NCBI GenBank assembly: GCA_965202585.1 | Contig: OZ241828.1 | Coordinates: forward strand, 20,088,001 to 20,152,000 | DNA length: 64,000 bases | Direction: 5' to 3' | From: Thalia democratica | Taxonomy: Eukaryota | Shown here: piece by piece, positions 11,790-62,001 of the stretch | Layout of the letters: every line of letters starts with the position of its first letter | How positions within the stretch are numbered: position 1 is the first letter of the stretch | Made by a program: the position numbers and the translations under genes | The notes under the pieces: model-generated | The model's input: the letters and a program-made list of their open reading frames with translations, nothing else | Told to the model about the DNA's origin: nothing | The model's database searches: none

Positions 11790-12035
11790 CTGGTTAGTTT
11801 AATTTTTAAGTTTGATAAAGTAGTAATTAGTTGAAAAATAAAAATCTTTCAAATGTCAGGCTTTACAAGTTTAAACGATTTTACACTGTATGAATATTCT
11901 GTTTCTAACACATTAAAAGTAAATGCAAATACAATAAAATTTTAGATATAATATTACTTAAATTAATCTATAAAAAGTAAAGCTTAAATAATTATTTTCG
12001 CTAAACAGCTATAAAAAACAACATCATCATCAAAC

Positions 12036-27000: not shown

Positions 27001-27269
27001 TAACGTTTGCCTTTACGCTTAGAAGATAGCAACTCGTTATTTTTACTTAAGTTAGTGTTTTGTGAGTTATTAGACAACTCATTTGTATATTTATCAGATG
27101 ATACGGGCGTAGAAACTGTGCATAAAGGCAGTTCCTTGTTTTCAGACGAACTAATAGTAGTGTTAGACTTATTTAAAGAGTTATCCTCAGTACTTAAGTC
27201 AGAATCTGATGACCCTGACTGGTAGAGAATCTCATGTACTTTAAATGTATTAAAATTACTCTCAGACAT
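12036..27269 (-). CDS. Giant gene 1, main exon (5,078 codons; about 5,140 aa with the last exon): acidic, largely low-complexity protein with helical-bundle repeats and several tandem repeats; no recognised family
   Basis: 15.2-kb uninterrupted ORF in an AT-rich genome; first ATG at 27269 (the track start at 27284 is TTG); internal protein-level repeats with synonymous divergence; 3' end coincides with a GT donor. Confidence 0.88.
14566..15030 (-). repeat. Coding Glu/Pro-rich 7-aa (21-bp) repeats bracketed by two copies of EVLPYNDFLQRSLEDARKEQDKL
   Basis: PEPQEEL/PEPEQEL units; the 23-aa block occurs at about 14884-14952 and 14566-14634. Confidence 0.85.
21369..22010 (-). repeat. Coding 69-bp (23-aa) tandem repeat, about 9.3 copies, with A/B alternation
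   Basis: A=KGAKNNDHLKSIDDKSISSNGSS, B=KGAKNNNLVKSVDDTSVSSKASS; order ABABABAAB. Confidence 0.95.
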
Positions 27270-27483
27270 ACTTAAATACAACAAACAAATAAAAAATTAT
27301 TGTGATACTAACGGTTTTCCACTTCTGTATGGTTCGGACACGACAACACTGACTTTGCTTGCTTTATTCTTGCTTGTAGACTCTTGAAGAGGCGAAATTC
27401 TTGTACATGCAGGCTGTTTCTGACTTGGTAAAACTTGTAGTTTGTGAAAAAATTCAAAAATATCTTGACTTCTATTGTTCGTG

Positions 27484-27504: not shown

Positions 27505-27822
27505 TTTAAAATTCCAAATTTTTTTGTATGATTGTGAAACTGAAATCATATCATTTAATGTGGATCTAATTACGATTTTAGTATATTTTATTATTACTTA
27601 TTTAGAATAATATTTTTAAATAAAAATATTCCATGATATATTCTAGTAATTGACCATATATTTTATTTTTTTGTTTACTGTTTTTTGTGCTCGTTTTTAC
27701 TGTGTTTTATCTGAAAATATACATTAATTGCCTTACTATAAACTGTTAAGTGTATATACGTATTGAATTATTGTATCTAAAACTTGTTATTTTGCATCTT
27801 AAAACTGTTAATAGACCAAAAT

Positions 27823-38930: not shown

Positions 38931-39460
38931 TAGTTTATTGAACGACAAAAAACGCTCAAAATATTTGGTCCTAGGACCTGGTGCACGAAGAACGTTTCGG
39001 TTATCGAGTCGCACACCACGGATACCTTTTAACGTCTTTTCTAGGATTCTACCTAACTGTTTGTTTATCATAAACATTAAAAAGAAGTTTGTGAAGTTAT
39101 TATGCTTGTTGTCAGGTTAACATTCTTTTTTTTTTAAACTTTTCACATTAGACTGCTAAAAAAGTTGTGCTCAAAACAGAATGGTAACAACTTAAAATAA
39201 TAAAATAAATACTTTTAATGTAATAGCTTAACCACCATCTATTAGAAGAACATTACTTATAAAAACTAAGTAAGGGTACGTTAAAGGTTACATATTATCG
39301 TTGACTAAGTTTTCTGTGAACAGAAGCACTTTAAAAAAAATTGTCCTGGACAAGATGTTAAAAGGTATTCGTGGTGTACGACTCGATAACTGAAAGGTTT
39401 TTTCGTGCACCAGGTCATAAGACCAAATATATTAAGCGCTTTTTGTCGTTCAATAAACTA
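38931..39460. mobile_element. Tc1/mariner-like MITE (530 bp) with about 116-bp imperfect TIRs
   Basis: 38931-39046 is the inverted copy of 39344-39460; TA on both flanks. Confidence 0.75.
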
Positions 39461-40034
39461 TATTTTAACTATATATTTTACTAAAAAACCCTTTAAAAAT
39501 AAAACTTGTGTACTTAGAAAGTGAACAAAATCTTTGAATACTCATTGTTGTAAATCTCTGAAGGATTGTGTTTCTATGTTCAATCTTATGCTATTAAAAA
39601 CTTAAACTCCTAGCAAACAAAACCAGTTTAAGTACAACCTAAATCTATAGAAAGTTTTATTGCTTCTCAAAATGTTTATGTAGATAATTTTATAAGTATC
39701 AACATGATTTAAAGTTTATTTCCAGTAAATACAAGATATAGTTGTCAGATTTTAATTAGTAAAAACCTTTACTAGATAAAACAAACAAATATCTAGCATA
39801 CTAATAGTAGAATTATAGCAATTCATGAAGTATGGAAACTTGTTTTTAAATTATTATTGCTTTAATCTTTCACTTGAAGACTACGTGGGTTATTGTGCTG
39901 CAATAAAAATATAAGTGCATTAAACATTTTTCTTCAGCTTTTAAAGAACTTGGTCAGTTTTGAAAACTTGTGCAACAAGTTATTAATTTAGGTACAAAAA
40001 TATCCGTTTTTTGATTGCCTTAAAAATGACTTTT

Positions 40035-40151
40035 CCTGGACAAGACGTTGAAAGGTATCCAAGTAGTGTGCGACTCGGCAACCAAAAGTTGCTTCGTGCA
40101 CCAAATCCTTTGACCAATATTTTGAACACTCTTTTTTCGTTCAACAAACTG
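40035..40151. mobile_element. Solo, more diverged TIR of the same Tc1/mariner-like family
   Basis: Colinear with 39344-39460 (tcctggacaaga...cgactcg...ttcgtgcacca...cgttcaacaaactg), followed by TA. Confidence 0.7.
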
Positions 40152-42264
40152 TAATAAGAAATAAACGACTGCAGATGTTAAACTAAATAGGCGTGAAGAG
40201 AGTTGTAAGAAGGATCCTTTTAAACTCACAAGGACAAAAACAGCTCTATTTAAAATTCGTCCAAGACTTCTTTATTTGAATGAGTGAGTATTTTTTTAGA
40301 TATTAACATGTTAAATCACCAGTATATTCACGAGACAATGTAAGTCTACTTTAAAATAAAAAAACTGTTTGCTTAATTTTTTTTGTGTTTATTTTATTCA
40401 AAACTTTTCGAAATCAATTCATGTAACGCAATGATGATTCAAGATAAGTTCTAAAACCTATTAGAAAAAAAATATTTAGTGAATAGTCCTTACAAGGTAA
40501 GACTGTTTTGTTAATCAATAAAAACAAAAGCCATATTTTTGAGTACCAACAATTTTAGTAATAACTTATTCTGTTAAATTTAAAATTCTTATGTAAACAA
40601 GTTTAAATGAACAAAGTTAGGTTTAAATAAGGGGTAGCAACGCATAACCTACCGGCTGAATTCAATTCGTATTTTTCAGCTGCAAATAAAGTCTTTAAAT
40701 ACAAATTTACATGTATTTAAATCTTTAAATACAAATATTTCGAAGTTTGCTTTTAGCTTGAACTTGATACACACAAGTGCTGGTTATTAAATATTTTCTT
40801 TAAAATTTTGATTTTAAAAAGCTTTTTTCTACTTAATATATATTTTCAAAACTTAGCGTACAACCAAGAATATTTTTACAAGTCCAACCAGCGAGATTTT
40901 TTTTTTGCTAGTCTTATTATTTCGGACAACTTCACATTAAATAAATAGTTAAGCTAGTTTATATGTTTAAATAGTTAATTAAAAAAATACATTCAAGTAA
41001 AGGTATTCCTTATAGAAAGTAATAGAAATACGATGATTTATTGAAAACTCAATTATATTTTCTTGTGATAGTATCTACTTACTTGTGATTTAAACTTGTA
41101 TTTTGAGTAATACAAGATCTACAACAAGTAGATAATTTAAAATAAACAAACTCACTTTTGGCTTAAGTAAACAAAAATTTATAGCCTGCGGTATACTTTA
41201 TAATTATAAAAAACTTGTGTAAAAGAAACTAATTTAGCCTCTTTCAAATCAAAAATTGACAAATACGTTATGTTTTGTGCAAACTGTGACGCCTTTATTG
41301 TTTAGTTAAAAAATTACTGTAATATATACTTTTTTATTTTAAAGTAAAACTGTTTAAAGTAATGTGGCCCGCCAAGTACTTTTTTTTAGTAAATCTGTTT
41401 TAAGTAGGCTGTCAACCGCTACTTTAATAAAATAACATATTTCTGTGTTTACCTAAAACTAATTTATATATACACTACCTTAATTCAAGTTAATTTTTAT
41501 CAATTAAAAATTAATATTTGTAATGCTAATCAATTTTCAATGATGTTTACAGATTAATTTATATTTAGCATGTAATTTGTGTTATATAGATAATAAAACA
41601 TCAGAAACTACAACTTATAAACAATATCACCTAAATTATAGACACTTGGTATATATTGTGTATAATGGCTGCTAAAATTAACTGCAAAGTTTGGAAATAA
41701 AGTAGATTAAATGCTAAACAATTAATTAGTAAAGTCATATCTTGCAATGCACTTAAATCTCAAGAATCTTTGGTAAGCATATTATTTCAAAGTTAAGAAA
41801 AACTTAAAAGGCTAAAAGCTAAGTAGTATTAATTAAAATCTTCAAAAAATATATCAGCTTAATGAGTACTTACTTAAAATAACAAAATAGACAAACAAAC
41901 TACAAAAGTATAGTAAAATCAAAGTATTTACAATTTAAAGGCTGTTTGCCTTTGATAATGGATGCACTTTTTTCCCAGATTAAAAACGTTGGGTACATAA
42001 AAAGACAGACAGTTATAAAACTGTACAATGAACAAGTTTGAAATATTTACAATCTAGTGACTGAAACTCTTTGCCAATATTCGCGCTAATTTATATGTTT
42101 TTTAACAAATCAAACAAAAAAAAAAAACTGTTTGTTTACTATTTACAAACTTTAATTTTTTTTTATGTTGCTTTATTTAACACTGAGCGTGTTGAAGTTG
42201 CTAATTACAAATTATAAAACATAAATTGTCACAAACAATGACAAAGAGTTCTATGACGTCACAA

Positions 42265-45200
42265 TTAATTTCTAGGAATTCCGGCGACAACAGATTCCTC
42301 GATACCGCAGTGGTTTGATCCCCTCAATATTTTGAAGTAGCCATGGTCACCCCAATCTGTGTTCCAGCTATTTGCTACTAACCTGTGAATTATAAACAAA
42401 CTTAAAAGTAAATATTTTCAAATTAATTAAAGATACGTAAAAATACTTATAATAAAGAAATATAATTTATTAAAATTTTTTGTAAACAATAAAAAATAGC
42501 CAGTTTTTTGCTTTGTTATTTAAATACCAAAAACAATAAATAATATAATAAAAATATTAACCAGTATTTAGTTCCATCTTCAACTCCCCATCCCAAAATA
42601 CGGATAGCGTGTCCTCCCAAGAAGTCCCCGGTAGTGTGTTGGTAAACTCCTGCGAAAAAGTTAAAATTTATCTTATTTATTGACCCTTATAGCCTCTTTA
42701 TATATAAGAAGTAAGAATTATATAGGTCTCAGGTTTGCACAAATATTCTCAAGTTGATTTTGAAGCCTATAAATATAAATAAAAAAGTTAAATCGTAGCA
42801 TAATAAACTTAACACCTGTGCTTAATCTTTACATTCATAGTTCTAAAAAGCTAGCTAATAATACTTTCAATTTTTTATCAGTGTAAATATAAACTATTCT
42901 TAATTCAACATGCATATAGCTAAATATGAAAAATGATAGAGTAACCATTTGTACGGATAACTTTGACTTATAATATGCGAATTCTTAAAAATATTTCCTA
43001 ACCCTTTTTCTTAAAATCGTAGATATAGTTCTTAAACTAAATTTTAAACCCTAACTTTTACTTATAATCTAACTGTAAAATTACTCGGAATTTTGATCTT
43101 CAAGAGTAATATGTTAACCTAATCCACAAAAAAAAAATGTGCAAGAGTCCACTGAAATTTTTTATACACTTTCTTTATTTTAGCATTTAATATATACTAT
43201 AGACATGTTAAAACGAACCAGATTTGTAAGTAGGGAAATCACTGTATACACTGAAAGCTTTTTCTAAATAAATAAATACTAAAAGAAATATAACTAGCCA
43301 GATTTATAAGTAGGTAAGTCACTATAAACACTAAAAGCTCCTTGGAAATTAATAAATATTTAAATAAACAACATAACTAGATTATAAACTAATATGTTAT
43401 TTATTCAATTTGAATAGATAAATACAAGAAACAAACCAGATTTGTAAGTAGGGAAATCACTGTATACACTGAAAGCTCCTTCTACAGGTCCGTTCTTAAT
43501 AATTTCCATCTGAATATCAAGCTCTGAATTGGGCAGACTGTAAGAGTGATCTCCGTAATACTTGTCATGGTGATAGTTGATTTGCTTGTTGCCCTCGCAA
43601 CGATGCCTGCATTTCGGAGTGGGGATTTCACCGCTACAATTTTGCCTTTTTCCTGTTTGGAGTGTTAAGTGTTGTAAGGCAGTAATTAAATTGAAAATTA
43701 GTTAGTTAGTTACAAAAAGTTTAAAAATTTCGTTAAAAATTTAATTTATCATTTCAATAAATTTCCATAGTATGATGTTATACAATTTTTTCTATATATT
43801 TTATTACTTATTAAGTTTAAAGTATTTTTAAATACCACAATCTAAAAAACAACATACATGTAAAATATAGACAATATAAGTCTATTTAAAGCAAACAAAT
43901 ACAAAGTACTTCAACAATCTTAATAAACATTTATTAGAAAATGTACGTTTTAACTACTCATTTCATTGAATAGATGTCTAACCAATATATAGCAAAAAAC
44001 TTTTTTTTATTTAATCTCTTTTTATAAAAATAATTTACATTGCTAAAAATAAAGACAAACTTAAAACTTAAGTAAACTAAACAACGATTATTTTATAGCT
44101 ATTAGTCTAAGATCTAGGCTATGGAGTAAATATGTTATTACTAGATTTTTGTACTTTAAAACATTTTAGCACACAAAATCTGTAATGACAATAATTATAA
44201 AACTCAACTTGAGCAAATTTACACTTACAGGCAAAATTCAATAGTTATAACTTAAATTTAGGATTATTTCATTTAGTATTATAAGAAGTAAATTAGTGAT
44301 TTTAAGTTGTATAAAACAATTTATTCTAACTTTACTTTATGTTTTTAATAACATTAAAAAGTTTATCTTGTATTTTAATACTTAATTTCAAGCTTTTTAA
44401 AAAATTCAAAGCAATTTGTAAATAGCCACAATTAAAAATTAGTTAGTATAAGTAAAAGGAAGTTACTAATCATTTTGAAATAAACATTAATCACAAATTT
44501 CTAATTGTGGTGTAACAAGTTTAATACTTACCATGAGTTGTCATATTTCAATCTAAGGAAGTGAATTTTAAAAGCTTCTATCTCTAACACATTTTTATTA
44601 AATATTTTTAGTAAACTTATAAACTTTTTAAACGGATAAATTAAAAAAAATTTTGAAAAATAAAATCTTAGGTAAATTTAGTTTTTATTTAAATTCTGAA
44701 AAAATTCAACATATTTGTCATTGTGTAAACTATTTAGTAGATTATTTTGTAAGTAAACGTACATGATATGAATTATGTTTTACATAATATTTTCAGAAGT
44801 TTAAAACTGATAAAAAACTACTAACTTAATATAATAAAAAATATAAATAGCTTGTTATCACAAACTTTTTATAACTTAATCACATAAAATCTAGTTTACG
44901 GGAGTTTATTATGCTACACTCAAAATAATAAATCATAAAATTTTCTTATCAAAAAAACCTTGACAAGTAATAAATTTATATTTGGCTAAAATAGTAGTGA
45001 ACGATATTTTTTTATTAAAAATAAATATTTTAAAATATAAACATACTGTTTTGTTAAGTAAGAAATGTTATTTTTACGTTTAAGTTGATAAAAACAAAAG
45101 GTTGTTTAAAAACCAAGTAGTTGTAAAAGTATTTTGCTCAGTATATGTATATACTACAAAACTAAGTTGTTTTGAAAATAAAATATAGCTCTTGTACCTA

Positions 45201-48200
45201 TAAAGTTCAAACAACAATGCTCAAAAATTTTAAACTTTATCAACATTAAACTACTTAACATTTCATTATACACGTTTTTAGAGAAATTTACGAAATGCTA
45301 ATATTATAAAGATACTTATACAGCTATAAAATGTTTGGCTAAAAGAAGTAGTAACTTTAATGAACTATATAATAGTATTTAAACTATTTTACCTATAAAC
45401 TACAACGAAGAATATTTAAAATAATTAAACTTTTAAGCATTAAACTACTTAACATTTCATTACACACAAATTTAAAGGTTGACCAAAACCAAATCTAATG
45501 AACAAGATATTATAATTTTTGATAACAAAAATAAAAAAATAGTTTTAAATGTCAAAACTTCTACAATTTTTAATTAATTAAATATTACATTAAAATATAA
45601 ATGTGGTCTACCAAAATTCAAAACAAACAAAATGTTTGAATACATTTGAAGTATGTTTATTTAAATGTTGAATAATGACACTTATGAAAGTAATCACATG
45701 ATTTTTGTATTGTTTTTCTTTATATTGCAATGTTCAAAATTTTAAAATCAGATATTTTGAAGATTAAGCAAAACTAATGGGACTTAATTAAATATTTTAA
45801 TAAAAAAATATCACATGATATTTCAATGTTTTCTTATGTGTTGCAACATTTGACATAAGATAATCAGAACTTTCGTACAAGTAAAATTAGCAGATTTTAA
45901 TAAAAAAAATTATTACAAAAGTTAGCACATGATTTTTTTACTGTTTCCTATACTGCAATATGTGACGTAATATATTGTAAATTTTTTACATTAAGCAATA
46001 TTTGGTAAACTTAAATAAAATTATTTTAAAACTAAGAATTAAGCTTTTGATTGTTAAATATTTGTTATGTTATGATTATTTAGTTTTGTGGTTTAAAAAG
46101 TATAAAATTTTGTATATTAGGCGTTAATCATTTTCTCTTTATACCGTTCAAAAATTAAACTTTTTAACTTACAGAAAATACTGAATTACACATAAATGCT
46201 CATTTTGAACTTTATACTTCTTATTATACATACAGGGTTGCCACTCTTCAAGCCAAAAAATCTTCCCTGAGTGACCAAAAATTTCCCTGAGTAACCTTAA
46301 ATTTCCCTGAGTTTCCCTGAGTATTTTTCAAATCTTAAAAACAATTTTTTCTCTTCTAACACAAATTATTAATACCTCATTCTCATTTTTCTTCTTTAAT
46401 AATAAAAGGAAGGTTGTATGTGTATGCTTCTGCATTAAATTTATGAAAAAAACTGTTTTCAAAAACTCAATCTTAAAAGGTTTAAACCAATTAAAAATTA
46501 AAAACTAAATTTTTGCACAACTTTGTGTAAACTTGTTAGTTAACTTTCTACATAAAAGAATAAAGTTTAATTTGTTTGACATTTTAATTGACAAAATTTA
46601 ATTATACTATAATAATAATTTCACATGAAGAACTCACTTAAATGCATACATAATAACTTCATTATGACTTGTATGTCTTTCCTAGCAACTGTTCTGAATG
46701 CAGTAAATAAAACTTAAAAGCTTAACATTATTGTAAAAAAACTTGCAAAAAGAAAGTTTAAAGAAATAGCTAAAGAAATATCTCATATCAAAGTACAACT
46801 TAATACCTAACAACTGACACAAAATAATCTAAAATTAATTTTTTTTTATGTCTTTTAGATGTTCATACACAATCTATTTTAAATAACTGAAAAAATAATT
46901 TTGATTTTAAAACAATTTCACATTACCTAATAAAAAAATCTTAATACTGTTTTTTTAAGTATGCAATTTCTAAATCAATAGTTTAAATTTTATTTTCAAG
47001 TTTATTTGCGTTGTCCTTAGCAGCTATTCCTCTTGCTAATAATTCTTTCATTGCTTCTAAATCAGACTGTTTGTTGGCATCTGCAGTATATTTGTCATAG
47101 TCTTCATTCAAACATTTGAGTTGCTTTGTAAGTTTACTTTTTTGTTATCCTAACTTGCTCAAAGCATCACCTTTATTTAGAACATTTTTAGCAAAGCGCT
47201 GTTGCTCAAGATATGCCAAATATTAGGCCCTAGAAGATTTTACAAGTTTTAACAATTCAGAACTTAGTTCAACTGTGCTTGGTTCTAGACTGTTTGCATA
47301 TAGATGATCTTTGATCATTCTTCGGGACCTTATTGTCATCTCTCCCATATTAGTTGATATTACTTCCTTATTTAAGCTAAAGCCCCGTTCAACACTTGCC
47401 TGGCCATTGTTAAGCACAAAAACAGCCTCAAGGACTCTTGTTAAATCTTTATACTTGCTTGGGATATCGAGTGTGTCAAAATAAAAGGTGTCTAAACTGT
47501 GACTTTTTTCAAGAAAATTTTCAAAAAGTATTTGAGTGTTAGAAGAACTTAACAAATCAATGTATTGATTAATGATGTCATCACCCTCTTTTGCTTTTAG
47601 TATCTTCATGCTGACAAGTTTTTGGACCAACCTTGTAAAGTTTCTGACACAACGGTCTTTACCCATTCCAATTAGACATGCCAGATTTAAAACAGCAGCC
47701 CTTCTTAAAAAGTTCAAACCAACAGTCATTCTTGTTTTAATTTTTTTTATTATAGCAAATATAAAAAGTTTACATTCATTGTGAAATGACTTGAACAAAA
47801 TGTTAGAAACTTTACCTTGATTTAGCAAATCTTGAATTAAAGTAGAAGCAGCACAATACAGAAGAAACTACATAAGTAACTAAAAATAAAAAGTTTATTA
47901 GAACTTTTCAATGAATAGTTAACAACAACTTTCATTTCTCTAAACTGTTTGATTTTACTTAAGTAAATATAAATTTAAAACTTAAAAAAACTACAATGTT
48001 AATACTAAGAATATTGAAGAACTAGCCGCAAGGCTAAAAAAATTCTAAATAACCACTTAAATAATAAAAATTACTACTTTTGAACAAAATATTGAAACTG
48101 GATTAACTAAACCTCATTCTAGATCTAGAAAAAAAATTTCCCTGAGATTTTCAAAAACCTCCCTGAAATTTAGAGAAAAAATCAAAACTTCCCTGAGTTT

Positions 48201-51200
48201 CCCTGAGTTAAAAGAAAAATGCCAAAATTCCCTGAGTTTTCCTGAGATTCCCTGAGTTTCCCTGAGATTTTCTACAGTTTGAAAATTCCCTGAGATTTCC
48301 TGAGTTCCCTGAGTTCCCTGAGTGTGTGGCAACCCTGTACATAAGATTTTGCATAACATGTATTTTAATAATTGTAATTTATTAATTTCTCAATTGTACT
48401 TAAACAATATTTTTAAACAATAGTTATTTTAAACCAGGTATTTTGTTTAATAAAAAATTATAACTGGGTTGTTTTTTTACACAGTTTTTAGAATACAAGC
48501 CACACTCTATGAGCTGTTTTGTAAACTAGATTTTAAATGTTTTTAAACAAGCTTGTTCATATGGTTAACAAATTGTTTTACCAACTATATGCTACAACTA
48601 TGCTTATCAGGATGTTTTAACAACATTTGTAATATAAAAAATTTTGGTATAAAGTTTTGAAAGATTTTGTTTTGTAATATAGTAAGAAAAAGTGTGAGTA
48701 CTTAACTCTTAGTTTAACACAATTAATTTTTATTTACAACAAGTAAAAATTTAAAACAATATTATTTTTATATCAATTTGAAAAAATAGCATATACAGTA
48801 AACAAGTTGTCTATTTTTTAAAATACAATAATAAATGACAGAACAATTATTTATTTTGTAAATTAGAGCAATATTTGATTTTTAATTAACCTGAGGATTA
48901 CATGTTTGACAACATATTTTATAAACGCGTTAAATTAAAAATACATATGTAACATGCGTATTCTTAAAAGCATTTTAAATTGGTGAAAATACAACTTGAA
49001 GTTTACTAGAAACTTTTAAATTGAAGCTTTTTATCAATTTTCTTGTACAACAATTAACTTAACCTACTATTAAGAACGGTTAAAATAATTTTCACAAAAA
49101 TATTAACAATTTTTCTGAAATTTTTAAAGCTTATACATAAACACTATTACAAAAACAAATAACCAACTTTAATTGTAAAAAATATTATTTTTTTGTTTTT
49201 TAAGTTTTTATGTACCTTCCAAGAATAAAATTTTAAATGAACGTATTTACATCATGTTTTGAAATATAACGTTTTTCCATTACCGTAAAACTAGTTTGCT
49301 ATTATTACGTATTATACAGAATAAAAATTATTTGTCAGCAAATGAAAGTTGTTGTTTAAAAATTATATTTAACTAATCCTTTATAAGCGAAAATATACTT
49401 ATAAAAGTTTTACGAAACAATAAATCGCTACTCAAAGCAATTAAAATTCTATTGAGCAATCAATATGTTTGAACTTATTTAACTTGTTGCAAAAGTTTAT
49501 TGCTTTATTTTTCGATTTATTATTTTGTTTATTGTGAACCATAAGTGTCTGTAGTTTGAAAAAACTTTAAGAAACATTACTGTAAATAAATCAATAAAAC
49601 TAGGACTTTTATTTTAAAACAGCTACTAAGAAACGGGTTTTAACTAAAGCTACACATTAATCTACTACTTTTTTATGGATTTTATTTTTCCAAATTAACT
49701 GTTACTATATTGTTTTAAAATGACTATAACTGAAATAGTAGTTGCCGCACAATTGGAAGAGCATTACATTTAAGTTAAGTCAAAAATCGTATATATACTT
49801 GTTACATTTGTTATACATGTGAATTTTTTAAATTTTAGGAAATCTTTTTTTAATAATGAACTTAGTAAAAATAAAACTACAAATAGTGTTGTAAATGAAG
49901 ATGGTAAAAAAGTCCCTGGAAAAACAACTTTTATACTCAAAATTACTCAACAACTCAAATTTAGTCTGAAGTTAATAAAATATAAAAATTTAGACCAGCG
50001 TTTCTAAAGTGTTTGACATTATCCCCTTTGGAATTAGCTATCAGAAATCAACAACTAGTAAGATGCTATTAGTAAATGGGTAATTAAGTAGCAAAGTGGT
50101 AGATATTTAATAAGGTGTGTTGAGTCATTATGTGTCACCAGATACCGCGGTGAATGTAATAAAATCCCCCAAATGAAAACAACTTACCAGGTACGTGATG
50201 TTCACATGGGGGTATTATATAGGGTTGGCATGTTTTAGTGTCCCCATAAAGTCCACCAGATACCAGTCCGTGGTGAACCCAATACTTCCATGCGCTGCCA
50301 GGCCATCCTCCGTCGCAACTGTGTGGAAATAAAATAATCAAAAAAGTATATAATTGCTCTTAAAGGAAAATGAAAGTCGAACTAATATTACAAATATATT
50401 GTATGCCATAATCGAGCTTATACACTAATGAATACTTGAATTTACAAAGTAATTCATAACAATAATATAGAAAATGTAAAACTCATGTAGTTAAGTTAAT
50501 TATATTGCACAATTTTTTAAAGATTTATCTGTATAGGCTAAAATAAATTACCCATTTGATGATCATGGTGATTTGCATGTATCATGTTTACGAGAGAAAA
50601 TACATCTAAATTAAGCACTGTAATTACAACGAAACAAAACAATTTATTCATTTGAAACTAAAGCAACATAACCAAATAAATTAAGAAAAAAATATATAAT
50701 AAAAAACAAAACATACCCATCCCCGCACCAGAACCCGCAGCAGGTCAACAGATCTTCAGATGAAATTTCAACGTTGATCTTACCTCTGCTGTGGACACAT
50801 ATCCTGTCACTAATTGCTTCCACGGCACCGAACGCCCAACATGATCCGCATGATCCCTGTGTTAAAAGTGTGGTTAGACTAAAAACGACCATAATGTTAC
50901 TTATTACCACGTGTTTTTTAACAAATTCTATCGTAAATGGTCTGTTTTTGAATACACTATGCAACAATGAGTATTTTACACTTGATATTAAATTAAGCCA
51001 GAATTTAAATTAAGCATGTATTGCGAGATTTATATAATTAACATATATTGTCTAAAATACAACAAACATTAAAGACACACAGAAATTTACTAGCTTTCAC
51101 AGTCTAAGTAATCATAATTATTAATGTTGAACAGTTCTAGCTTCTATTAAGTTTAGGTTTGTATGCATGACTTATAAAGAAAAAGAAAAATTTACATTTT

Positions 51201-52347
51201 ATGATGTTTACTTAGTGATGAAAAACATTCGTTTATACTAGTCTAATAAGTTCCAATTTTTTACAAAACAATCAGTTTTAAAGCCCAGTTCAATACAAAA
51301 GTGCTAATTATATAAGTCCTTATCAAACTGTTATAGAATTGTAATAACTAACCTGGTCTCTAATTTCACTGATAGTTGTGCAATTTGGCCAATTTTCTCT
51401 GGAGTCAAAGTTTTCAGGTAATTCCAGCATTCCGAATTTCAACTTGTGACTCCTGAAACAAAAACAAATAATAATTAAGTATGTAGGTTTGTATGTAAAA
51501 TAAAAATCCAGGCCACAAAAACTTAAATTACAACTTCAGTTTTTTTTTCTAACGTAATATAGAAGTAGTATGTATATATAGTAGTATGTAATAAAAATCA
51601 ATTTATTAAAAAGTTTAGATTTATTTACTGGTACAGTTTAAGTAGGTACTTAGTCTACGTTTATATTTTAATTTAAAAAACATTAGAAGCTTTACTTTTT
51701 TTCTTTAAAATTAAACACAAAGGTTATATAAAAACTCAGATTTTTTATAAAAAACTAAAAAAAATTCATTTACTTCAAAGGAAGTTTAAATCCTCCATCC
51801 AATTTAGCTCCACACAATCTCTTTAAATCTTCAGGTTTGTAAAAATTCGGGTCGAAATTGTGGGCTGCCTGTAAACATAAAACTGAGTTAAAAAAAAATA
51901 ATACAATCAAACTATTTAGCTTGGCTGCTTTGAAAAATGTCTTTTTTTGTACATTAGTTATTAACTACAAACAGGTCATATTTTCATAACAGCATAATGT
52001 TATTAAATAGAAAGGTATATAATAAAATAGTTTAGTATATTTTCAAAAGATATATTTTGTTTGAAACATGTTTGAAACATTAAACTGTAAAACACTTTTA
52101 TTAGGTCATATTTAAACTTTAAAATATAACTATTACATTTAAAACCCCCACCATTAAGTAATAAACTTCATTAAAAACTATTTAAGATATCAAATGTTTT
52201 TATTAGTAAGTAATAAACAAAACATACCTTCCAAGTAGATTTGGGGTTACTGTTGATATGTTCAACAATTGAATGAAAAGTGTCAAAACTATTGCAGTTT
52301 GCTATGTAAGCAAGTTGAACTAACAACAATGTTGTTGCTAATTTCAT
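42265..52347 (-). CDS. CTSB: Cathepsin B (papain-family C1A cysteine protease), complete, 8 coding exons, 335 aa
   Basis: Exons 52347-52228, 51868-51774, 51452-51353, 50856-50717, 50318-50188, 43652-43437, 42649-42562, 42382-42265; all GT-AG and phase-consistent. Signal peptide, [11 protein letters not shown] (catalytic Cys), occluding loop [17 protein letters not shown] (His), NSWNTDWG (Asn). Confidence 0.97.
43219..43340 (-). repeat. Two intronic copies of the 3' end of cathepsin B exon 6, each with its own acceptor and donor (45 and 42 nt)
   Basis: 43219-43263 tttag|AAAAAGCT...TCTG|gttcgt; 43299-43340 ccaag|GAGCT...TCTG|gctagt. Confidence 0.9.
46233..48337 (-). mobile_element. Internally deleted hAT-like DNA transposon in cathepsin B intron 5
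   Basis: TIR CAGGGTTGCCA / TGGCAACCCTG, TACATA on both flanks, many subterminal TTCCCTGAG repeats, transposase remnant inside. Confidence 0.85.
47223..47828 (-). pseudogene. C-terminal fragment of a hAT-like transposase
   Basis: [17 protein letters not shown] resembles the S/NAxxERxFS signature of the hAT dimerisation region; the catalytic N-terminal part is missing. Confidence 0.7.
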
Positions 52348-54357
52348 TGTTTATTACTAATATTCTGTTAAAAAATATTAGTTGAATTATAGTATCATGA
52401 TGCGGTAAATACTTTTTATATTAAAGCAAAAGATAAGTTGAACTAAAATAATACTTTTAAAAGATATTTGTATTAAAAACACTCTTAATTTTATAACACA
52501 TTTGAATTTTTATAAAAAGTTCAAATGTTAAAAAAAAATTTTAAGCAATAATACTAACTGAAATCATTCTGGTACAAGGAACTAGTAAAACTTTTAGCAA
52601 CAATTTTTTGTGGTAGATCACTAAATAAAAAAATGTTTTGGTATTGCAAACTTTTAAAGCACTTTAAAGCTATAACACAGATGTGCAACTAATATTGTGT
52701 AACGTTTTATCAAATAACAATTACAGTAGTTTAAATATAGAAGTAAAACTAAGACACACATAGTAAAAAAATAAAAATAAGACACACATGTTAAACAATA
52801 GTGAATAATATATAATAGTGAATGGTATATAATAAAAAATGTGTAAAATAAGACTAAATGTGCTTGATAGTATAAAAATGTGGTAGATAGTAAAAACTGA
52901 ATGAAAGTTATATTTTGAATGTTGTAAATATTAAGAAGCATAATGTACAATGCAGCAAAAAGTAACTTAAAATAATACTTAAAATATTTACAAATCAATA
53001 AATCTGAAAAACGTATTTATACAATAAAAAATTAGTTATTAATAATAGTTGTTTTATACACAATATATACAGAAGTAAGCTTATAAACCATCTGAATCTT
53101 AAATAGTTACACAATAAAAAGTATATATATACAGAAAATTACAAAGTAGTAAAAAAATCTGAAAAACTTTCAGTATCTATTTAAATAAAGGCTTAGCTAA
53201 ATAATTACAAATAAAATCTATCTCTGCATAAAAGAAATAAAATAAACGTATTTTAAGTCATAGGATGCTGAAGAATTTTGGCAAAAAAAGCATAAGTTAG
53301 TTCAATTTAAACTATTAATAATAATTATAAAACAACGTATTAGTATTAAAAAACTGAAACAACTGAACTTACTTAATAAACAAACCAATAACACAACATC
53401 ATAATGACTTGAAGCTTTTTCGATTTAACCACAAGAAATTATAAGAATTACTCATTTGAAAGTAATAAATTATTAAAAATAAAGCTAAGTAGCGCCCATA
53501 AGTGATTAAAAAATTAAACTTTCTTGAACTTCAAGAATAATTTTTTTTTTAACATTTAAATGAAACAAATATTTTTATGTTAAAAATGTAATCATAAACT
53601 GTTAAAATTTTTTAGATATTATTTTTGAGTTAAATTAATTTTGTAGTAAGGTTTTTTAATAATTTTTCAAATTGTTATATTCTAAGCAGAGACTTTTTTT
53701 GGTAAAAATACCCATAAAAAAGTTGTCATGTTTTCTCTTAAGAATTTATTAATTTAATCTTTGTTAATTCTATTAATGCAAGTTATGATGAGCTTTTTAA
53801 CATACTTAATCATAAATTAATATTAAAACCTTAACAAAATAACAACTGAACTAAAAAGAAAGTTATAATTTGATTAAACATCATAGTTGAATTTTTTTTT
53901 GTTTTAACATTCAAACTATTCTTATAATTTCATAAGTATTAGTAACCAGAAAAATGTGCAGAATCTTATTTGATTATTGTCAAGTAAAATATGTTTATAA
54001 AAACTTTACAGAAAGTTTTGTTTGAATGCACCCAATAAAATCATATTGATGCATGTAAAAAAGTTATAAAAGATATACAGAAAGTAAATGCTTAATGAGT
54101 TCAAAGTTATTTCAAAGAAAAAGAATGCTTTTATAAAAGGATTACAGAGCAATTTAAAAACTTTGAAGAAAAATACGTCGGTTTAGTATTTGTTACATTA
54201 TTATTGGAGATCAAAAAAGTTTAAGATCTCTTTCTACTGACATCTCAAGGTCAAAGTTTCGGTATTCAAATACATCAACGGTAAGTTTAAATTTCACCCT
54301 TTCATAAAACTAGTTGTTTTCTGATGGTAACCAAACAATAAGTTTTAAATCTGAACT

Positions 54358-57300
54358 TTAAGAGCTCTCTTCACTTATCGGCAGGTCCTTATGATCAAAC
54401 TTCAAATTTCCGTCTTCACTGAAATCGTGCACCGTGTGGCCGTCGCCCCTGACAACCCACTTGTAGGTTAGCAACCCCTCGCTTCCCACGGGTCCCCTCG
54501 CGTGTATCCGGGTCGTTGACACCCCAACTTCCGCCCCCAGCCCCATACGTTGACCGTCCGCAAACCTGTGTTGAGAAATAAGAATTTGATTAAAATAGTA
54601 TGTTATTTAAATATTATTTGTTAAAGTTATGTAACTAATGTAAATAATTTTTAAAAAATCATAAAGCTATAAAAGTTTTTTTCAAACTTACATTGCTTAA
54701 TGCTAACTAAAACGATAACAAAAAGTGACAGTTAGAGTTTTACTACTAAAAGTTAATTTAAAATTTATTTGATTTAAAACGCGTAAACTTTGTATGGCCG
54801 TCAACAACATGCTTTAAGTAGCAAAAAAAATAATTGGCTAAAACAGAGCACTAAACATCGTTAAGAAAAGTACTTATTCTTTATTTCACTAGACAAATTT
54901 ACTAAAAAACATACTTATGACATACAGTTACAAAACAAACACACACCTAGTACTAGTATTATGGAACACACAAGCACTATCAACATTTTGCAGGAAATAA
55001 TCAGCATTGTCCTGGTTATTAGTGACAATGGAATCGGTGTGAGAACTTCCATATTGAGATATGTGATCTACAGCGTCTTGTACATTGTCCACTATTTCAA
55101 TACAACACTCCATTGCAGAGTATTCATGGTTTAGATTTACTGTTGATGTAGGTCCGAATAATAATCTGTTTGTTAATTGTTTGTTTATTAATATTGATTT
55201 CAACACAACGATTTGTTGATGTATGTTCAGTGTGTAAAGATACTTTAGATGTAGGTCCAAACAACAATCTATTAATTAATTCTTTATTAATTATAATTAT
55301 TTATTTTTATTGAACTATTTCAATACAAAATCTAATAGATGAGTATTCAGTATTTAGTTGTACAACAGATGTTTGAACAAATAACAATAATCGAAATCTA
55401 AAAATAAATTACTATTTGTTTCTACAATTTTACACTACATTCAATACAAACCTGGAAGCAATCTTGGGTCCGAGGTGTATTTTAACACCCTCAGCAGCCA
55501 ATATATCGTTCAACTGTTTGAACACAGATGTGTGAAGTAAATCTTTGTGAATCAACAATGTTTCCATTGCATTACAAGCTGCTGGATAGTTACATTTCGC
55601 GTCACGTACTACTCTGTAGGTTTAAATATCACAAAAGATATTAACTTTACATCAGTGTACGACTTTTAAGTTTATTAATTATAATTTTTAAAACGTATAC
55701 AGTTAAACATTTGAAAAAAAAATACAAAAACACATTGATTTTTTTACATCTGAGCAAAAACTATATTTCTATATTTAAATTTAGCAAACATCTACTTTAA
55801 GCATTTTGTGTATAAAAATGAGATCAATAACATTTCTGATATAAAGTATTAGCTCAGAATGTAATTTTACACGGGTAGCTTAAATCTTAGTTAATAATCG
55901 TTTACTGACAAATTTTTCATACCAATTTAAGTAAAATCACAACGTTTAAACAAGTTCAGTTCAGAACAAAATGGTTAATAAAAATCAATGATCATCAACA
56001 ACAACCTTTTTAACAAGTTATAATTTAACAAATTACCCTATATAAATATAATATAATAAAAAAGAATATTACCAACCTGCAAGCCTGATCAACACTGCAG
56101 TCCCTATCAACAAACACGTGACAAACACCCTCGCTGTGGCCCAGCACTGGTACACCTGCCGGGGCGGCCTTCTCCTGGATGCCACGGACCATGTCGCTGC
56201 TTCCACGGGGTATAATCAGGTCGATGTGGCCCTTGCAGTTGTCTATCAGTTGAGACGTTGCTTCTCTGCTTTCTACCTGTTAAAACAGTGTTTCTAATTA
56301 GAGAGTTCATTGAATAATATTTATTTGCAGTTGTCCATCAGATGCGATGTTGCTTTTCGAGATTCGACCTGTGAAAATAGTTTTAAGTTAGGGGGTTCTG
56401 TTTATGTATACTTAAATTTTATATAACAGCCCCCTAACAGCCTTACTTCGGAAACTCGGTCTAAATATCGTCAAATTTTACTTAAAAGTAAATGATACCA
56501 ACCCTGGTTTCAGTATGACTGAAGGGGTGATTTCTTTTTTAGAAACAATCAATGATGCATGAACAAACTAATGGTTTCCTAACTAATATCGACGCCTTAC
56601 TTTGGAAACTACTGATATACATTTTGCGAATTTTAAGTATTACCACTTAATTTAGCTAGTTTATTTTTGCTTAGCTTTTATATTGCACTACTTAAATGAA
56701 TATCAACTAAAAAATTTTTGTAAATCATAAAATATACATAGGATACAAAACATAATATCATAATAATTTCAAGATTTAGAGAGTTACTCTCTATTTTTAT
56801 GTAGCCTTATGTAGCTAAAAATGTTATGTACTAATAAAGTCATGATAAATACAACTAACCAACTGTGCAGCATCTGAGCATTTATGAAGATCCAAGCTGT
56901 CTTGTACTAGTTTATGCAGGGCCTTGTTAGTATTCAGTGATTCCTTCCCGCCTTTCAACAGCACCCCGTTACCTGTTGCAATGGCGAGTGATGCTATTTG
57001 CGGCAGGCAATCCGGCCTGCTCTCGAATATTATGAGAACAACTCCTATTGCCACGTTGATCTGCTCTGCTGTGAGGCCTTCTGCTAGCTGTAATATTATA
57101 CAGATTTGTATAGTTATTTTGCAAGTAAATTTCTCAAAATTTTACAACTCCAAGATTTTAGGCTTATTCGAATATAACTTTTTTGTTTGAGATTTTAACA
57201 ATATTTTTATTTTGGTGAGTAACGAACTTTAATCATTCTAACTGCTAAAAGTAAACAAGTAAGTAAGAATTTTTTTGTTTTTAAGTATAAGTTTAACTTT

Positions 57301-60300
57301 ACATTCTTCAAGTTTACAATAAATTCCTGCAATTCAGTTTTCTTTTTTACCATAAGAATTTACGTTTCTTAAAAATCTACCTATTTCTCAGATAACAACA
57401 TTTAAAGCTTATTTTTGCAGATAAAATAATACTTCGTTTATGTTTTATAGTATATATTTAAATAAGATGCTTGTTAACCAATAACATATAAAAAAAAAGT
57501 TATATTACCTGTCTCCTCAACAATATCTTGCCCAGTTTATCGCAACTGTCTTGCGCAACCTGTCTTATACCAGTGGCCAGCTCATTTATTTTAGCTGGTG
57601 ACATTACTAATCTGCTCACCATTGATGGTGACAATTTTGAATCCTTTTTTGCGTTTGCTACGTCTATCTGTAAGAAATAATTTACCATTATTTTTATTCA
57701 CGTATTTTTATACTATATTCTACAAATGTAACAATTTCAATGTATGTATTATAAACCTCCTTAGTTTTGGTTTTCAAATACATTATTATTTTGACATCAG
57801 TTTCAGAACCTAATTTTCCATATTATGAGTAAAAAATATATGAAGTAAGTGTAAAATTAAAAATTTGTTATCAAATTTGTTCATTTTAAATGATAAACCT
57901 ATATAATAAGCTTAACAAATACTTTCTATAATTATGCAGTTAGATAATGTATCAAAATTGTAAAAGATAAAAAACAACCTATGTATAACTAAAAATATAG
58001 CAAAAACTATTAAGTATTAGTTGTTTATGATACAGACTTTTTTTACAAATTATGTTATATTATATTCTATATCTATGTTAGCAATATAGAATAAAACAAT
58101 ACTTTTGCATACTACTTAATATTTATTTTAACAAACCATATTAGCATTTATGATTTTATCTTGCCTCTCAATCAAAAGATCTGCCATCTTATTAAGAATT
58201 TCCCTTCTTTCATCTCCTGATAGTTGCTGAAGTTTTCTGCTGCCGTTTCTAGCATCAACACCCTGATGTGTGTCGGATGTTGCTTGCACTTCTGATCTGT
58301 TTTGTTTATTAAATGTTATTTGAAACAGCATTTACTTATATGATTATTAATATAGGTTGATACCTAGTGTGTGTCAAATGTTTATTGAGAATCTAACTTT
58401 AAACATTAAAAATATATTATTTTAATGTACTTTAAAAATGAATATTTAGTTTCTGAAGCTAATCGAACTTCTGACCCTATGTTAATAAATGGTTTTCATC
58501 ACAACGGTAGCTTTTTAATTTCTAATTTCTAATTTTAAATTTCGTTTTAGTTTGCGCCTCCCATAAGGATCCTATTGTTGCCTCCGACTTTGAAGCGGCT
58601 ACATCTCAAAAATTATTTTGAATTTTTAAAATCTGTAAAAAGCATCTTGTAGCTTAGTAAAAACTATATAAAATAAGATCAAAAACCAAAAAAGGGTGTT
58701 TACCCCCCTATGCCCTTAATACTTAATGAATGGCTGATGTAAACAATAATCTTTACTCATTTAACTCAATACATTGTAGGTAATATTTAGATAATAATAA
58801 GTCACAAGGCTTATAGGCTTGTAACAAAAGACAATATGGTTTTGAATCTGCATGTGGCCTTTTCTTTTTTGGACCAGTAAAATGAATGGAAAAAAAGTTA
58901 AAGTTTAGGCTAAAATAAGAATAAATAATGTTTTATAATAAACTATTTATCTGGTGTCCAGAAGTTTAATAACATTTTATCTTGTGTTTCAAAACTAAAA
59001 ACAAAACTTATAAATCATTGCAATCAACTTATAAATTACTAAAATTTAAGTAGATAAAGAGACTTACGCTTTAATTAATAGTTATTAGTTGTAAAATATA
59101 AATAGTAAACTAACTTATCATGTGTGAAGAAAGTACCAATTTCTTTTCCATTAACAATATCCAGCAACATAGTAGTACCTTGTTTGGAACAACCATTACA
59201 AATTACTACTGATGTACCGTGATTTAAACACCACACTGATGATTCTACCTGTTTTTTAATAAAGGTAGTTTAAAAATAAAAAAATTCAACGAAAATATAA
59301 ACTTTAACAGAAATTAAATAGAATTATAGTTAATGTTGTAACTGTTTTGTAATTAAGCTAGTTTTAGCATCACAATTACATTGAAAGTATTTTTTATCAA
59401 ATAAATTTAAACCGTGCATTTGTTGTTTTTAAAACCTGCGGTTAACATTTTACCACAATTTTTTAGTACAACAAAATTTAAAACGAAATTAAAATCTTTT
59501 GGGTAAGTTCTATTGAGTACTAAACAATAAAAAAGTATTGGAATAAATAAAAAAACACTCTATTTCTATCAATCAAACTGAAGTAAATAAAAAGTTTCTT
59601 AAAATTTTTACGCAAAAACATTTAATCAATTATGGTAGCTTAACTTTTGAGAATAAAAATAAGCTAGGGCTTAAATTTAGATTAAACACAAATAAAAATT
59701 CAACTTAACAAAAACTGATAATACAAAGGAAACAAAAAAAACAACAAACCTTGGAGTCCATACCACCGAGTCCAACATTGGACTTTTCTCCAAACTCAAC
59801 TTGATCGCTGAACACTTGAGGGCAGTAAACAGGTATCAACTTGCTGTTTTCAACACTCGGGGGCGCTGTTAGCAGTCCGTCGACGTTCGACATCAAAACT
59901 AGTAAGTCGGTGTTTGTTTGTACTGCAAGTCTGTGAAAAATAAAAAATTAAAATAAATTGCATTTTACATCGCTGTAAGCATGTATTTTAACTTGGAAAA
60001 ATACTATACTTCGATTGTTTACGTAGAGTTTATATTAAAAACTCTTAACTTTATTAAACTATCTTTTTACCTTGCAGCTACTTCATTTATAATTTTATAA
60101 AAATTGATTATTTTTAAACAAAATTCTTACCTAGCAGCAAGTGAATTATAACCACTTATTTAAAAAAATTTCCGAATAAAAAACAACTAACCTGTCAGCA
60201 AATTATAAATGGTTTTTTGTTTAACAGAAAGTAATGAAAGTATAAAATAAGCATTAAAAAATACAAACCTAGCAGCTAGTGAATCATTGTCGCTTATTTT

Positions 60301-61760
60301 GATAGCTCCTTGGACATCTTTAGAATGGGGTACAGGAGCTGCAGCATCGTTTGTGTTAATAATTGGTACAATAGATAATTGTAACAAGTTGTCAATAGTT
60401 GATCTGTGTAATATTAATTTGTGTTAATGATGGAAACTACTGATAATTGTAACAAGTTGTCAATAGTAGATCTGTGATAAAATATATTTGTATTAATGAT
60501 GGGAACTATTGATAATTGTAACAAGTTGTCAATAGTTGACCTGTGATAATATATATTTGTATTAATGATGGGAACTATTGATAATTGTAACAAGTTGTCA
60601 ATAGTTGATCTGTATAAAATATATTTGTGTTAATAATGGGAACTATTGATAACTGTAATAAGTTGTCAATAGTTGACCTGTATAAAATATATTTGTGTTA
60701 ATGATAGGAACTATTGATAATTGTAATAAGTTGTCAATAGTTGACCTGTGATAAAATATATTTGTGTTAATGATGGGAACTATTGATAATTGTAATAAGT
60801 TGTCAATAGTTGACCTGTGATAAAATATATTTGTGTTAATGATGGGAACAATTGATAATTGTAATAAGTTGTCAATAGTTGACCTGTGATAAAATATATT
60901 TGTGTTAATGATAGGAACTATTGATAATTGTAATAAGTTGTCAATAGTTGATCTGTGAAAAATATATTTGTGTTAATGATTGGAACTATTGATAATTGTA
61001 ACAAGATGTCAATAGTTGATCTGTGAAAAAGATTATTTTATTATCATAAAGACAGACTTTGGTTTTTAGAATTCTTATAAATTTAAAAAACTTTTTAAAT
61101 CAGACAAAAAATATCAAATGAATAAGTTGTTTGCTACAATAACTAAGTAATATTATAATCTTGCCGTATAATTCAAATAAACTGCATTTGTACTCATATA
61201 CAGATGCCAAGCAAAAAGTCTTAAAAATGGAAGATACATTTTAGCTTAAGTTAGTTTAGTTTAAAAGATTCTGTATTAGAATAAAAGTTTAAGTTTTGAT
61301 CATGTAAAACAAATTTCTTTTACCTTAGCACACCTCTGCGTTTAATTTAAAGTAAATACAGTTTTTACAAAAATATTTGTAGTGAAAAATAAACTAAGAT
61401 TTGAACAGAAAATCAAGATATATTTTGTCACTTACCTTAATCTTAATATTAAAAAAAACAGCTATAACATGTTTTTATAGATGTTATTATTTTACCTCAG
61501 TGCATCTCTGTGTTCAACATCAAGATCCCTCCTACTAATCAACACTTGTGCGGTATTAACACCATACTGTCCGAACATGGCATCATATAATGACATCAGC
61601 CCTGCTTGTCCCACTGCAGCGCAAGACTGGTTGTTGATCAGGGAAGTTCCCCTGTTGTTTCTTATGGTTTCGCGCACGCTCTTGCTCAGCAGCGACTCCT
61701 TGTGGAGGATTTGTCTTCCGAAAGCGACCGCCCCGCTCGACACTATCATCACTTCTTTGC
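54358..61760 (-). CDS. ALDH18A1: Bifunctional delta-1-pyrroline-5-carboxylate synthase (glutamate 5-kinase + glutamyl-phosphate reductase), 11 exons; N-terminal exons lie beyond the window
   Basis: Exons 61760-61496, 60403-60269, 59930-59750, 59248-59115, 58296-58137, 57667-57509, 57087-56860, 56276-56077, 55613-55452, 55165-54947, 54565-54358; all phase-consistent. Motifs [84 protein letters not shown]. Confidence 0.96.
55196..55397 (-). repeat. Two diverged intronic copies of the 5' part of P5CS exon 55165-54947, each behind an AG
   Basis: 55268-55196 [24 protein letters not shown] and 55397-55310 ..[26 protein letters not shown] versus the exon [26 protein letters not shown]. Confidence 0.85.
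56321..56371 (-). repeat. Intronic copy of the 5' end of P5CS exon 56276-56077 with its own acceptor
   Basis: tttcacag|[15 protein letters not shown] versus ttttaacag|[16 protein letters not shown]. Confidence 0.9.
58693..58719. mobile_element. Solo Kolobok-like terminus
   Basis: CCCCCCTATGCCC|TTAA resembles the ends of 8554-9361 and 62002-62644; no partner end found. Confidence 0.35.
60066..60205 (-). repeat. Two or three short intronic copies of the 3' end of P5CS exon 60403-60269, each followed by a GT donor
   Basis: TCA CTT GCT GCT AG|GTAAG (60153-60131), GTA GCT GCA AG|GTAAAA (about 60085-60071), and weaker GCT GAC AG|GTTAGT (60199-60192); the exon reads TCA CTA GCT GCT AG|GTTTGT. Confidence 0.7.
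60374..61030 (-). repeat. 68/69-bp minisatellite, about 9.5 units, each made of the splice acceptor plus the first 19 codons of P5CS exon 60403-60269
   Basis: Units start near 60374, 60442, 60511, 60580, 60648, 60716, 60785, 60854, 60923 and 60991; sense unit tttatcacag|(R)[18 protein letters not shown]. Confidence 0.95.
61318..61347 (-). repeat. Decayed intronic copy of the 3' end of P5CS exon 61760-61496 with donor
   Basis: tttaccttagcacacctctgcgtttaa versus the exon edge tttacctcagtgcatctctgtgttcaa. Confidence 0.75.
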
Positions 61761-62001
61761 CTAAATAAATTTTTAGATTAGTTTTATTCTAATTATTTTT
61801 TTATAAACTGCACATTTTAAAATATATTTAAAAAGTTTTACTCTTCATATTTACTATAAAAAAAGTTGTTTTTAAGATAAAAAAAAATATTAAATAATTC
61901 AGTTTTTTTTTAATTGTTTAAGCTGCAGGTTTTAATATTTTACAATTTAGGACACATTCTATTAAAAAAAAATTATATATTATATATTTTGTTAGATTTA
62001 A

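Follow-up and report, generated by a model that had tools for sequence, protein, structure and literature searches.

We analyzed a 64-kb stretch of the Thalia democratica genome (contig OZ241828.1, positions 20,088,001 to 20,152,000; hereafter the window, numbered from its first letter). In two genes of the window, cathepsin B (CTSB) and P5CS, the edges of several exons and their splice sites are repeated in the adjoining introns. These copies, termed echoes, are head-to-tail direct units of 60–140 bp on the gene strand, with tandem offsets of 92, 103/223 and 82/138 bp. The variation among units of the largest array is not neutral. We consider it slightly more likely than not that the echoes are silent tandem duplicates and minisatellites spanning splice junctions and that they continue to trade sequence with functional alleles, which are highly divergent.

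Both genes lie on the minus strand. CTSB (42265–52350) is represented by eight exons forming stop-free coding pieces, including exon 6 at 43437–43652, with an intron 5 of 6.5 kb. Its exon translations match Pfam Peptidase_C1 and cathepsin B in PDB (E 1e-20). The part of P5CS within the window (54361–61765) matches Pfam AA_kinase and PDB P5CS 7f5t (E 5e-17). Four public runs, X1, X3, X4 and X5, were placed on two stretches of the window. Two of them are DNA runs, X1 from organism A and X4 from a related organism, B, and X5 is a metatranscriptome of marine origin. X3 acts as RNA of organism A, as its depth is restricted to exons and its joints have CT..AC ends. The X3 joints and exon-only depth define P5CS and confirm its introns at 55166–55451, 55614–56076, 56277–56857, 57088–57508, 58297–59114, 59249–59753, 59927–60274 and 60404–61495. 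At 43549 and 43591 the window is unlike X3 and both X1 haplotypes and shares its bases with X4 and X5; therefore, X1 is not simply the assembled haplotype. Read evidence was taken from k-mer contigs, which drop rare isoforms, so that rare use of a pseudo-site may escape them.

Echoes were recovered using self-BLAST, Tandem Repeats Finder (TRF) and local alignments. All main cases described in the initial annotation were found in place, i.e., at CTSB exon 6 and at 55165, 56276, 60403, 60275 and 61496. We then scanned the junctions with probes of 50 nt of exon and 15 nt of intron, each aligned against its own intron and scored by a shuffle-based z with a threshold of at least 8. The X3 joints set 18 junction edges known from RNA, belonging to the eight P5CS introns and CTSB intron 6; six of them scored z 8–36 on the gene strand, whereas the reverse-complement controls reached at most 4.6. 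The weaker cases formerly proposed near 55645 and 58448 gave z values of 0.5 and 3.7, which is the level of these controls, and were set aside. Echoes of 5′ edges lay upstream and those of 3′ edges downstream, as had been noted; this is the outcome expected of any tandem duplication spanning a junction. RNA joints placed the authentic splice sites at 55165, 56276, 60403, 60275, 61496 and 43437, and one terminal unit holds each real boundary. The units of the acceptor array and donor ladder described below reiterate the splice site, carrying CAG or AG/GT.

The echoes are real germline structures. X1 contigs with no differences from the window span 43230–43463 (both CTSB echoes and the exon edge), 55080–55486 and 56219–57117, ruling out haplotype mis-joining, an artefact that the initial annotation had named, at CTSB, 55165 and 56276. 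In RNA the echoes are silent: only authentic joints were found among the joints listed, and the depth over the echoes was zero in X3 and X5 at the level of contigs. As each copy carries one splice site and has no RNA cover, the earlier alternative that the copies are relics of alternative exons is excluded.

Exon 60275–60403 of P5CS is flanked on both sides, with an acceptor array upstream and a donor ladder downstream. The array (60404–61043, minus strand) is a minisatellite of nine extra units, each consisting of 13–14 nt of intron, CAG and 55 nt of exon start. Its periods are 68, 69, 69, 68, 68, 69, 69, 69 and 68 bp, and TRF reported a period of 69 with 10 copies at 93% identity (score 1110). 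The junction between units is compatible with AAA/AAATA microhomology of 3–5 nt. Between array consensus and exon, 5 of 54 positions differ, all of them third codon positions; a sixth difference, AAC/AAT, is the duplication breakpoint. Seven of the nine copies keep 18 of 18 residues, and all nine acceptors keep CAG. The array is skipped in RNA, where the X3 loose end at 60405 leads on to exon 61496, and organism B DNA (X4) shows no depth over 60480–60879. In-frame read-through of 69-bp units was ruled out, because the 68-bp units break the frame and all pseudo-acceptors hit a stop. The exon-derived end of each unit gives a TTAAC motif resembling a branch point approximately 21 nt upstream of the next CAG (60404–60440); judging from this motif, array copy 2 may supply the branch point for the authentic acceptor.

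The donor ladder (60069–60199, minus strand) runs downstream from the real donor of the same exon and comprises three pseudo-donors, at spacings of 77, 61 and 60 bp. All four occurrences of the 10-mer GCTGNNAGGT in the window lie within 60069–60276. In the alignment, AG/GT and a GCTG core are present in all copies and the remainder of the units has decayed. The three pseudo-donors (GTAAGA, GTTAGT and GTAAAA) are nearer to the donor consensus than the real GTTTGT. The echo at 60120–60161 is 79% identical to the real donor edge at 60275, with differences at codon positions 1/2/3 of 2/1/3.

The remaining P5CS echoes are all on the minus strand. The acceptor and exon start at 55165 were echoed twice (A, 55200–55298; B, 55314–55388; offsets 103 and 223; z 14.2), with differences of 10/4/8 in A and 5/6/12 in B; echo B has lost its AG, and either acceptor, if used, leads to a stop. 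At 56325–56384 is an echo of the acceptor and first 44 nt of exon 56077–56276, forming a clean 92-bp tandem (z 21.8; 78% identity over 60 nt). Its differences are 3/1/6, including AGC/TCT for Ser and AGA/CGA for Arg, 11 of 14 residues are kept, and use of the pseudo-acceptor would bring a stop after 15 codons. The weakest case, at 61315–61352, is a decayed copy of the exon 61496–61765 donor edge (38 nt, 74% identity, z 8.1), with differences of 3/3/3 and a stop codon. Across P5CS, every pseudo-acceptor meets a stop after 15–102 codons if used, in agreement with the earlier observation that these acceptor copies would bring a frameshift or stop. Separately, both DNA runs reached a word depth of 1e5–1e6 over the segment 58480–58880 in a P5CS intron, where loose ends are numerous; the segment is a dispersed repeat of very high copy number.

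In CTSB, exon 6 is followed by two echoes of its donor edge on the minus strand. Echo E1 (43299–43345) copies the last 47 nt of the exon and carries a GC pseudo-donor; echo E2 (43211–43266) is a near-identical copy of the edge with a GT pseudo-donor. The exon part of E1 is 87% identical to the donor edge of exon 6 and keeps 13 of 14 residues, and its six differences all fall at third codon positions (0/0/6). E2 is 94.6% identical over 56 nt, with differences of 1/1/0; within 43219–43266 it has a core in which 40 of 40 positions are identical. To judge from this core, which is set in diverged flanks, E2 probably underwent recent conversion or exchange with the exon. The flank downstream of E2 corresponds to the start of the intron beside the single exon edge of organism B; therefore, E2 marks the original junction. 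The flank of E1 showed marginal homology to the local intron start (shuffle p 0.06). A gapped alignment resolved the block into three units of approximately 82 bp, one with an insertion, which supports an old unit of this length.

The CTSB block also differs between haplotypes. It was found only in the X1 contig resembling the reference, at a depth of 37.5 compared with 67.5 where the haplotypes coincide, which fits presence on one haplotype. Neither of the two main organism B haplotypes has E1; their sequence jumps from 43429 to about 43200 and leaves a single unit; X4 joints link 43189/43202 to 43429. Thus, the window has three units, the main haplotypes of organism B one and its minor haplotype two, so that copy number varies between haplotypes and relative to organism B, both here and at the array, which lacks X4 depth. 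X3 RNA joins 43439 in exon 6 straight to the exon ending near 42650, and depth over E1 and E2 is zero where CTSB depth exceeds 1000. This zero depth rules out, for bulk RNA, the possibility that E1 and E2 are micro-exons (frame-preserving cassettes of 42 and 45 nt). A candidate dispersed repeat at 43349–43394 was rejected, as its matches, of 80% likeness, are probably spurious and AT-rich. Intron 5 of CTSB holds a stop-free open reading frame (ORF) of 214 aa (47226–47867, minus strand) with no Pfam match, possibly left over from a transposase; short tandem repeats of the TTCCCTGAG type lie on either side of it, at 46256–46322 and 48132–48323.

The initial annotation had claimed that the copies keep the protein and change at third codon positions. 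This pattern holds for E1 and the array and partly for the 56276 echo; it does not extend past the first seven codons in 55165 A and B, and it fails at 61496 and at the 60275 donor. To quantify it, we used a null model of a neutral echo and a selection-filtered exon, which predicts that 39–44% of differences fall at third positions. Pooling all pairs except E2, six in number, gave 38 of 76 (50%; P 0.03–0.17 against the null). The older echoes match the expectation for one constrained and one neutral lineage, and the set as a whole comes close to the outcome, no synonymous excess over that expectation, which the initial annotation had said would refute its claim. Two young cases, E1 and the array, exceed the null, so that something beyond decay acts on them.

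Array copies 2–10, none of which is spliced, showed variable-site events of 2/1/9 by codon position, that is, three events over 36 sites at positions 1–2 and 9 of 19 at position 3, with 8 of 13 in the intron part. Positions 1–2 (3/36) differed from third-position and intron sites together (17/32) with P 5.6e-5. This codon-wise variation among unused copies rejects free decay of the units. In E1 (overall P about 0.006 against the null), all four third-position C were changed compared with none of 12 G/C at positions 1–2 (Fisher 5e-4), and the four changes are C to T or A. Base composition was rejected as the cause of the bias in E1 and the array, because G/C changed at position 3 and not at positions 1–2. 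The idea that all echoes are plain dead tandem duplicates whose coding-like pattern reflects chance and the constrained exon lineage, or, in a weaker form, assembly artefacts of a heterozygous genome, could appeal to the pooled share, which is not clearly over the null, to outliers chosen post hoc from short sequences and to an array copy number that contigs cannot verify, but it is highly improbable given the within-array and E1 G/C-site tests and the zero-mismatch contigs that cross diverged echoes.

The allelic data indicate where such variation may come from. P5CS haplotypes in X1 fall into two classes, with depths of about 44 and 33, and in the divergent X3 contigs 92 of 1017 P5CS exon bases (~9%) are unlike those of the window. 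Among the listed exonic variant sites of P5CS, 29 of 34 are at third positions. The haplotypes are ~12% apart in introns and ~9% in P5CS exons; the intron flanking CTSB exon 6 differs at 10 of 84 bases between two haplotypes, while exon 6 is nearly invariant. At position 60361, the base of the array is the one that X4 and X5 carry in the functional exon. Since the allelic divergence of P5CS equals the difference between array and exon, the pattern there is best explained by exchange with functional alleles. The earlier proposal that echoes were captured from divergent functional alleles therefore finds support at P5CS, in the 9% divergence, the 5/54 array differences and the state at 60361, and none for CTSB E1, whose six states occur in no sampled allele.

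We propose the following course of events. Small germline tandem duplications with units of ~60–140 bp straddle a splice junction, and some have expanded to form short minisatellites. The working edge is still the unit attached to the body of the exon, and the others are silent intronic pseudo-splice sites. As the working copy would tolerate synonymous change only, the third-position bias of older echoes would be explained. Young units would go on trading sequence with the working edges of exons, through gene conversion or unequal crossing-over and also between homologues. As the working edges are ~9% divergent between alleles, mostly at third positions, allele-type, selection-filtered sequence would be moved into intronic units. 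We infer both this exchange and its interallelic component; the duplications, their presence in read contigs, their silence in bulk RNA, the copy-number differences between haplotypes, the extreme allelic divergence of P5CS and the non-neutral variation of the array units are observed.

Several observations weigh against this proposal. Exchange between units was not observed directly. The six third-position states of E1 were found in none of the X1, X3, X4 or X5 alleles of CTSB, and exon 6 polymorphism among the sampled alleles is just ~0–2%. At 60361, both X1 haplotypes carry the reference state and not the array state. The copy number of the array is that of the window sequence, and k-mer contigs cannot verify it. 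Moreover, exchange explains neither the excess of echoes at junctions over other non-coding DNA nor the conserved GCTGNNAGGT core of the donor ladder. In a further search for a source of E1, tblastn within the window found no paralogue donor, and no X1, X3, X4 or X5 contig lay on E1 beyond the reference haplotype. Metagenome contigs were scanned with two degenerate patterns, one for the CTSB and one for the P5CS exon edges, and no match was found. A homologue search with the 71 aa of CTSB exon 6, subject to a length filter that leaves out full-length proteins, yielded no candidate for another allele.

In a broader reading, purifying selection on proteins would extend into the introns of this hyper-polymorphic species. 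Exon-anchored repair between divergent homologues would favour echoes at exon edges, coding-competent silent cassettes would keep exchanging, and introns would hold a genome-wide, selection-filtered archive of exon edges. We regard this reading as possible but doubtful.

In E1 the peptide is kept and the codon bias seems relaxed, a pattern that second-order selection acting through conversion would suit better than capture from a sampled allele. We considered whether selection reaches the echoes themselves: damaging units would yield defective alleles through conversion or recombination and be removed in a species of very large effective population size, synonymous sites would drift under AT-biased mutation, and the echoes would form an archive of silent cassettes. 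E1 fits this account, with six third-position changes, the loss of four C-ending codons that the sampled working alleles keep and no change at positions 1–2. The codon-wise variation of unused array copies fits as well, and E2 may be taken as evidence of exchange with the exon. However, homology of ~47–55 nt at 87–93% identity should rarely convert, which would make the selective cost tiny, the older echoes decay evenly over codon positions, and the sample is small and was picked after the fact. We give this account little credence.

The junction excess bears on another explanation, in which the mutation itself is specific to junctions. Among non-junction, non-coding 65-mers of the window, 6 of 359 controls reached z of at least 8, all from two duplicated loci. 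Compared with the 6 of 18 junction probes, this is an approximately 20-fold excess (Fisher 3.8e-6), which is inflated because the window was chosen for its echoes; counting all predicted CTSB and P5CS edges, the proportion is about 6 of 40. In simulated duplicates, the slower evolution of exons extended detectability just ~1.3-fold, so that detection bias is small beside the excess. Under this explanation, homologue-templated repair of breaks in very divergent introns, anchored in the conserved exon and completed by a microhomology template switch, would make the duplicate allelic at birth, or flap- or Okazaki-type duplication would occur at exon-positioned nucleosomes. The divergence of haplotypes both in introns and in P5CS exons, the AAA/AAATA microhomology with which the array junction is compatible, and the match between array-to-exon difference and allelic divergence are all in its favour. 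Nevertheless, the choice of the window by its echoes raises the junction count, E1 has no donor allele in the sampled runs, the mechanism was not itself observed, and ordinary unequal exchange accounts for the ladders once a duplicate exists. We consider junction-specific mutation fairly improbable. The sole clear local direct duplicates in intron-only or intergenic sequence besides the echoes are at 45189–45477 (95 nt, 78%) and 39329–40153 (137 nt, 76%).

A further reading is that the pseudo-sites are functional splicing elements, either decoy or poison sites, as also raised earlier, that feed nonsense-mediated decay (NMD), or extra landing sites for U1 or U2AF that aid a weak authentic site. 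The three pseudo-donors keep AG/GT and are nearer to the consensus than the real donor in units otherwise decayed, all nine array acceptors keep CAG, and use of any P5CS pseudo-acceptor would give a premature stop. However, no joint to a pseudo-site was present among the joints listed, and RNA depth on the echoes was zero. In addition, the main haplotypes of organism B lack both the array and the CTSB echoes, which are thus not conserved, echo B lacks AG, E1 has GC in place of GT, and codon-wise variation is not predicted for a splicing signal. A splicing function is a distinctly unlikely explanation.

Elsewhere in the window are two giant intronless ORFs facing apart, at 12030–27284 (minus strand, 5084 aa) and 27784–35769 (plus strand, 2661 aa). 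Both have internal coding repeats, e.g., a 69-bp periodicity at 21370–22069. Outside these two ORFs, the window is AT-rich (20–33% G+C).

Reiterated splice junctions have been known as isolated curiosities; in this one window, a third of the tested junctions carry such tandem copies. If the codon-structured variation of the unused intronic copies holds genome-wide, it would mean that the non-coding DNA of hyper-diverse species is shaped by exchange between alleles or, alternatively, that selection can act on unexpressed copies through gene conversion. Pseudo-splice sites near the consensus and coding-like intron segments will mislead gene predictors and tests of function based on the ratio of nonsynonymous to synonymous change (dN/dS). 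In addition, the arrays are natural test beds for the choice of the spliceosome between identical sites.

Silent donor cassettes for gene conversion are known from the pseudo-V segments of chicken immunoglobulin genes and from Neisseria pilS. In those systems, as in the broader reading of the echoes given above, unexpressed partial copies are kept coding-competent by donating to an expressed copy. However, the cassettes diversify a protein and are clearly selected, whereas the peptide is conserved here, and the echoes would be putative donors. Human minisatellites, in the work of Jeffreys and co-workers in the 1990s, reportedly undergo interallelic conversion-like and unequal exchange. We propose that such exchange would shift unit variants between alleles and along the P5CS array. 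The terminal unit here, unlike that of a human minisatellite, is under protein-coding selection, which would make the imported variation codon-structured; exchange in the present arrays is what we infer. Mutually exclusive exon duplicates are also local tandem copies of coding sequence within a gene that keep the peptide. The echoes, by contrast, are fragments with a single splice site that are absent from RNA and are not spliced in frame; the P5CS echoes end in intron sequence and show no RNA use, and we rejected an origin as mutually exclusive or alternative tandem exons.

Gao and Lynch reportedly treated, in 2009, the internal duplication of genes and the gain of introns through tandem duplication of genomic DNA. 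As in that process, small duplications within a gene repeat splice signals, the extra copy leaves with the intron, and NMD tolerates mistakes. Unlike in that process, no new intron arises here; instead, a pre-existing junction is copied with the flank of the old intron, and ladders form. Intron gain from an AGGT-containing exon segment does not describe the echoes, which include 8–30 nt of the old intron flank and lie inside older, longer introns. Small intragenic tandem duplications reiterating splice signals are an accepted route of change in gene structure (reviewed in PMC3443670), including in Drosophila (PMC2891723) and the potato RdRp gene (PMC4974935).

A close parallel is the 37-bp variable number tandem repeat (VNTR) of human F7 intron 7, whose first unit spans the exon 7 donor and whose reiterated pseudo-sites are silent in normal splicing (PMC1557585). 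In both cases, a minisatellite has grown from an exon end and its splice site, with the authentic site followed by silent pseudo-sites. The two differ in that, here, the largest array is at an acceptor, several junctions per gene are affected and the differences between units are mainly at third positions. Thus, the initial statement that no named mechanism covers the pattern was too strong, as junction-spanning tandem duplication and minisatellites such as the F7 repeat are known (PMC1557585). The echoes are of a known kind; what is new is their density per gene, the ladders on both sides of one exon and the codon-structured variation in units that are not used.

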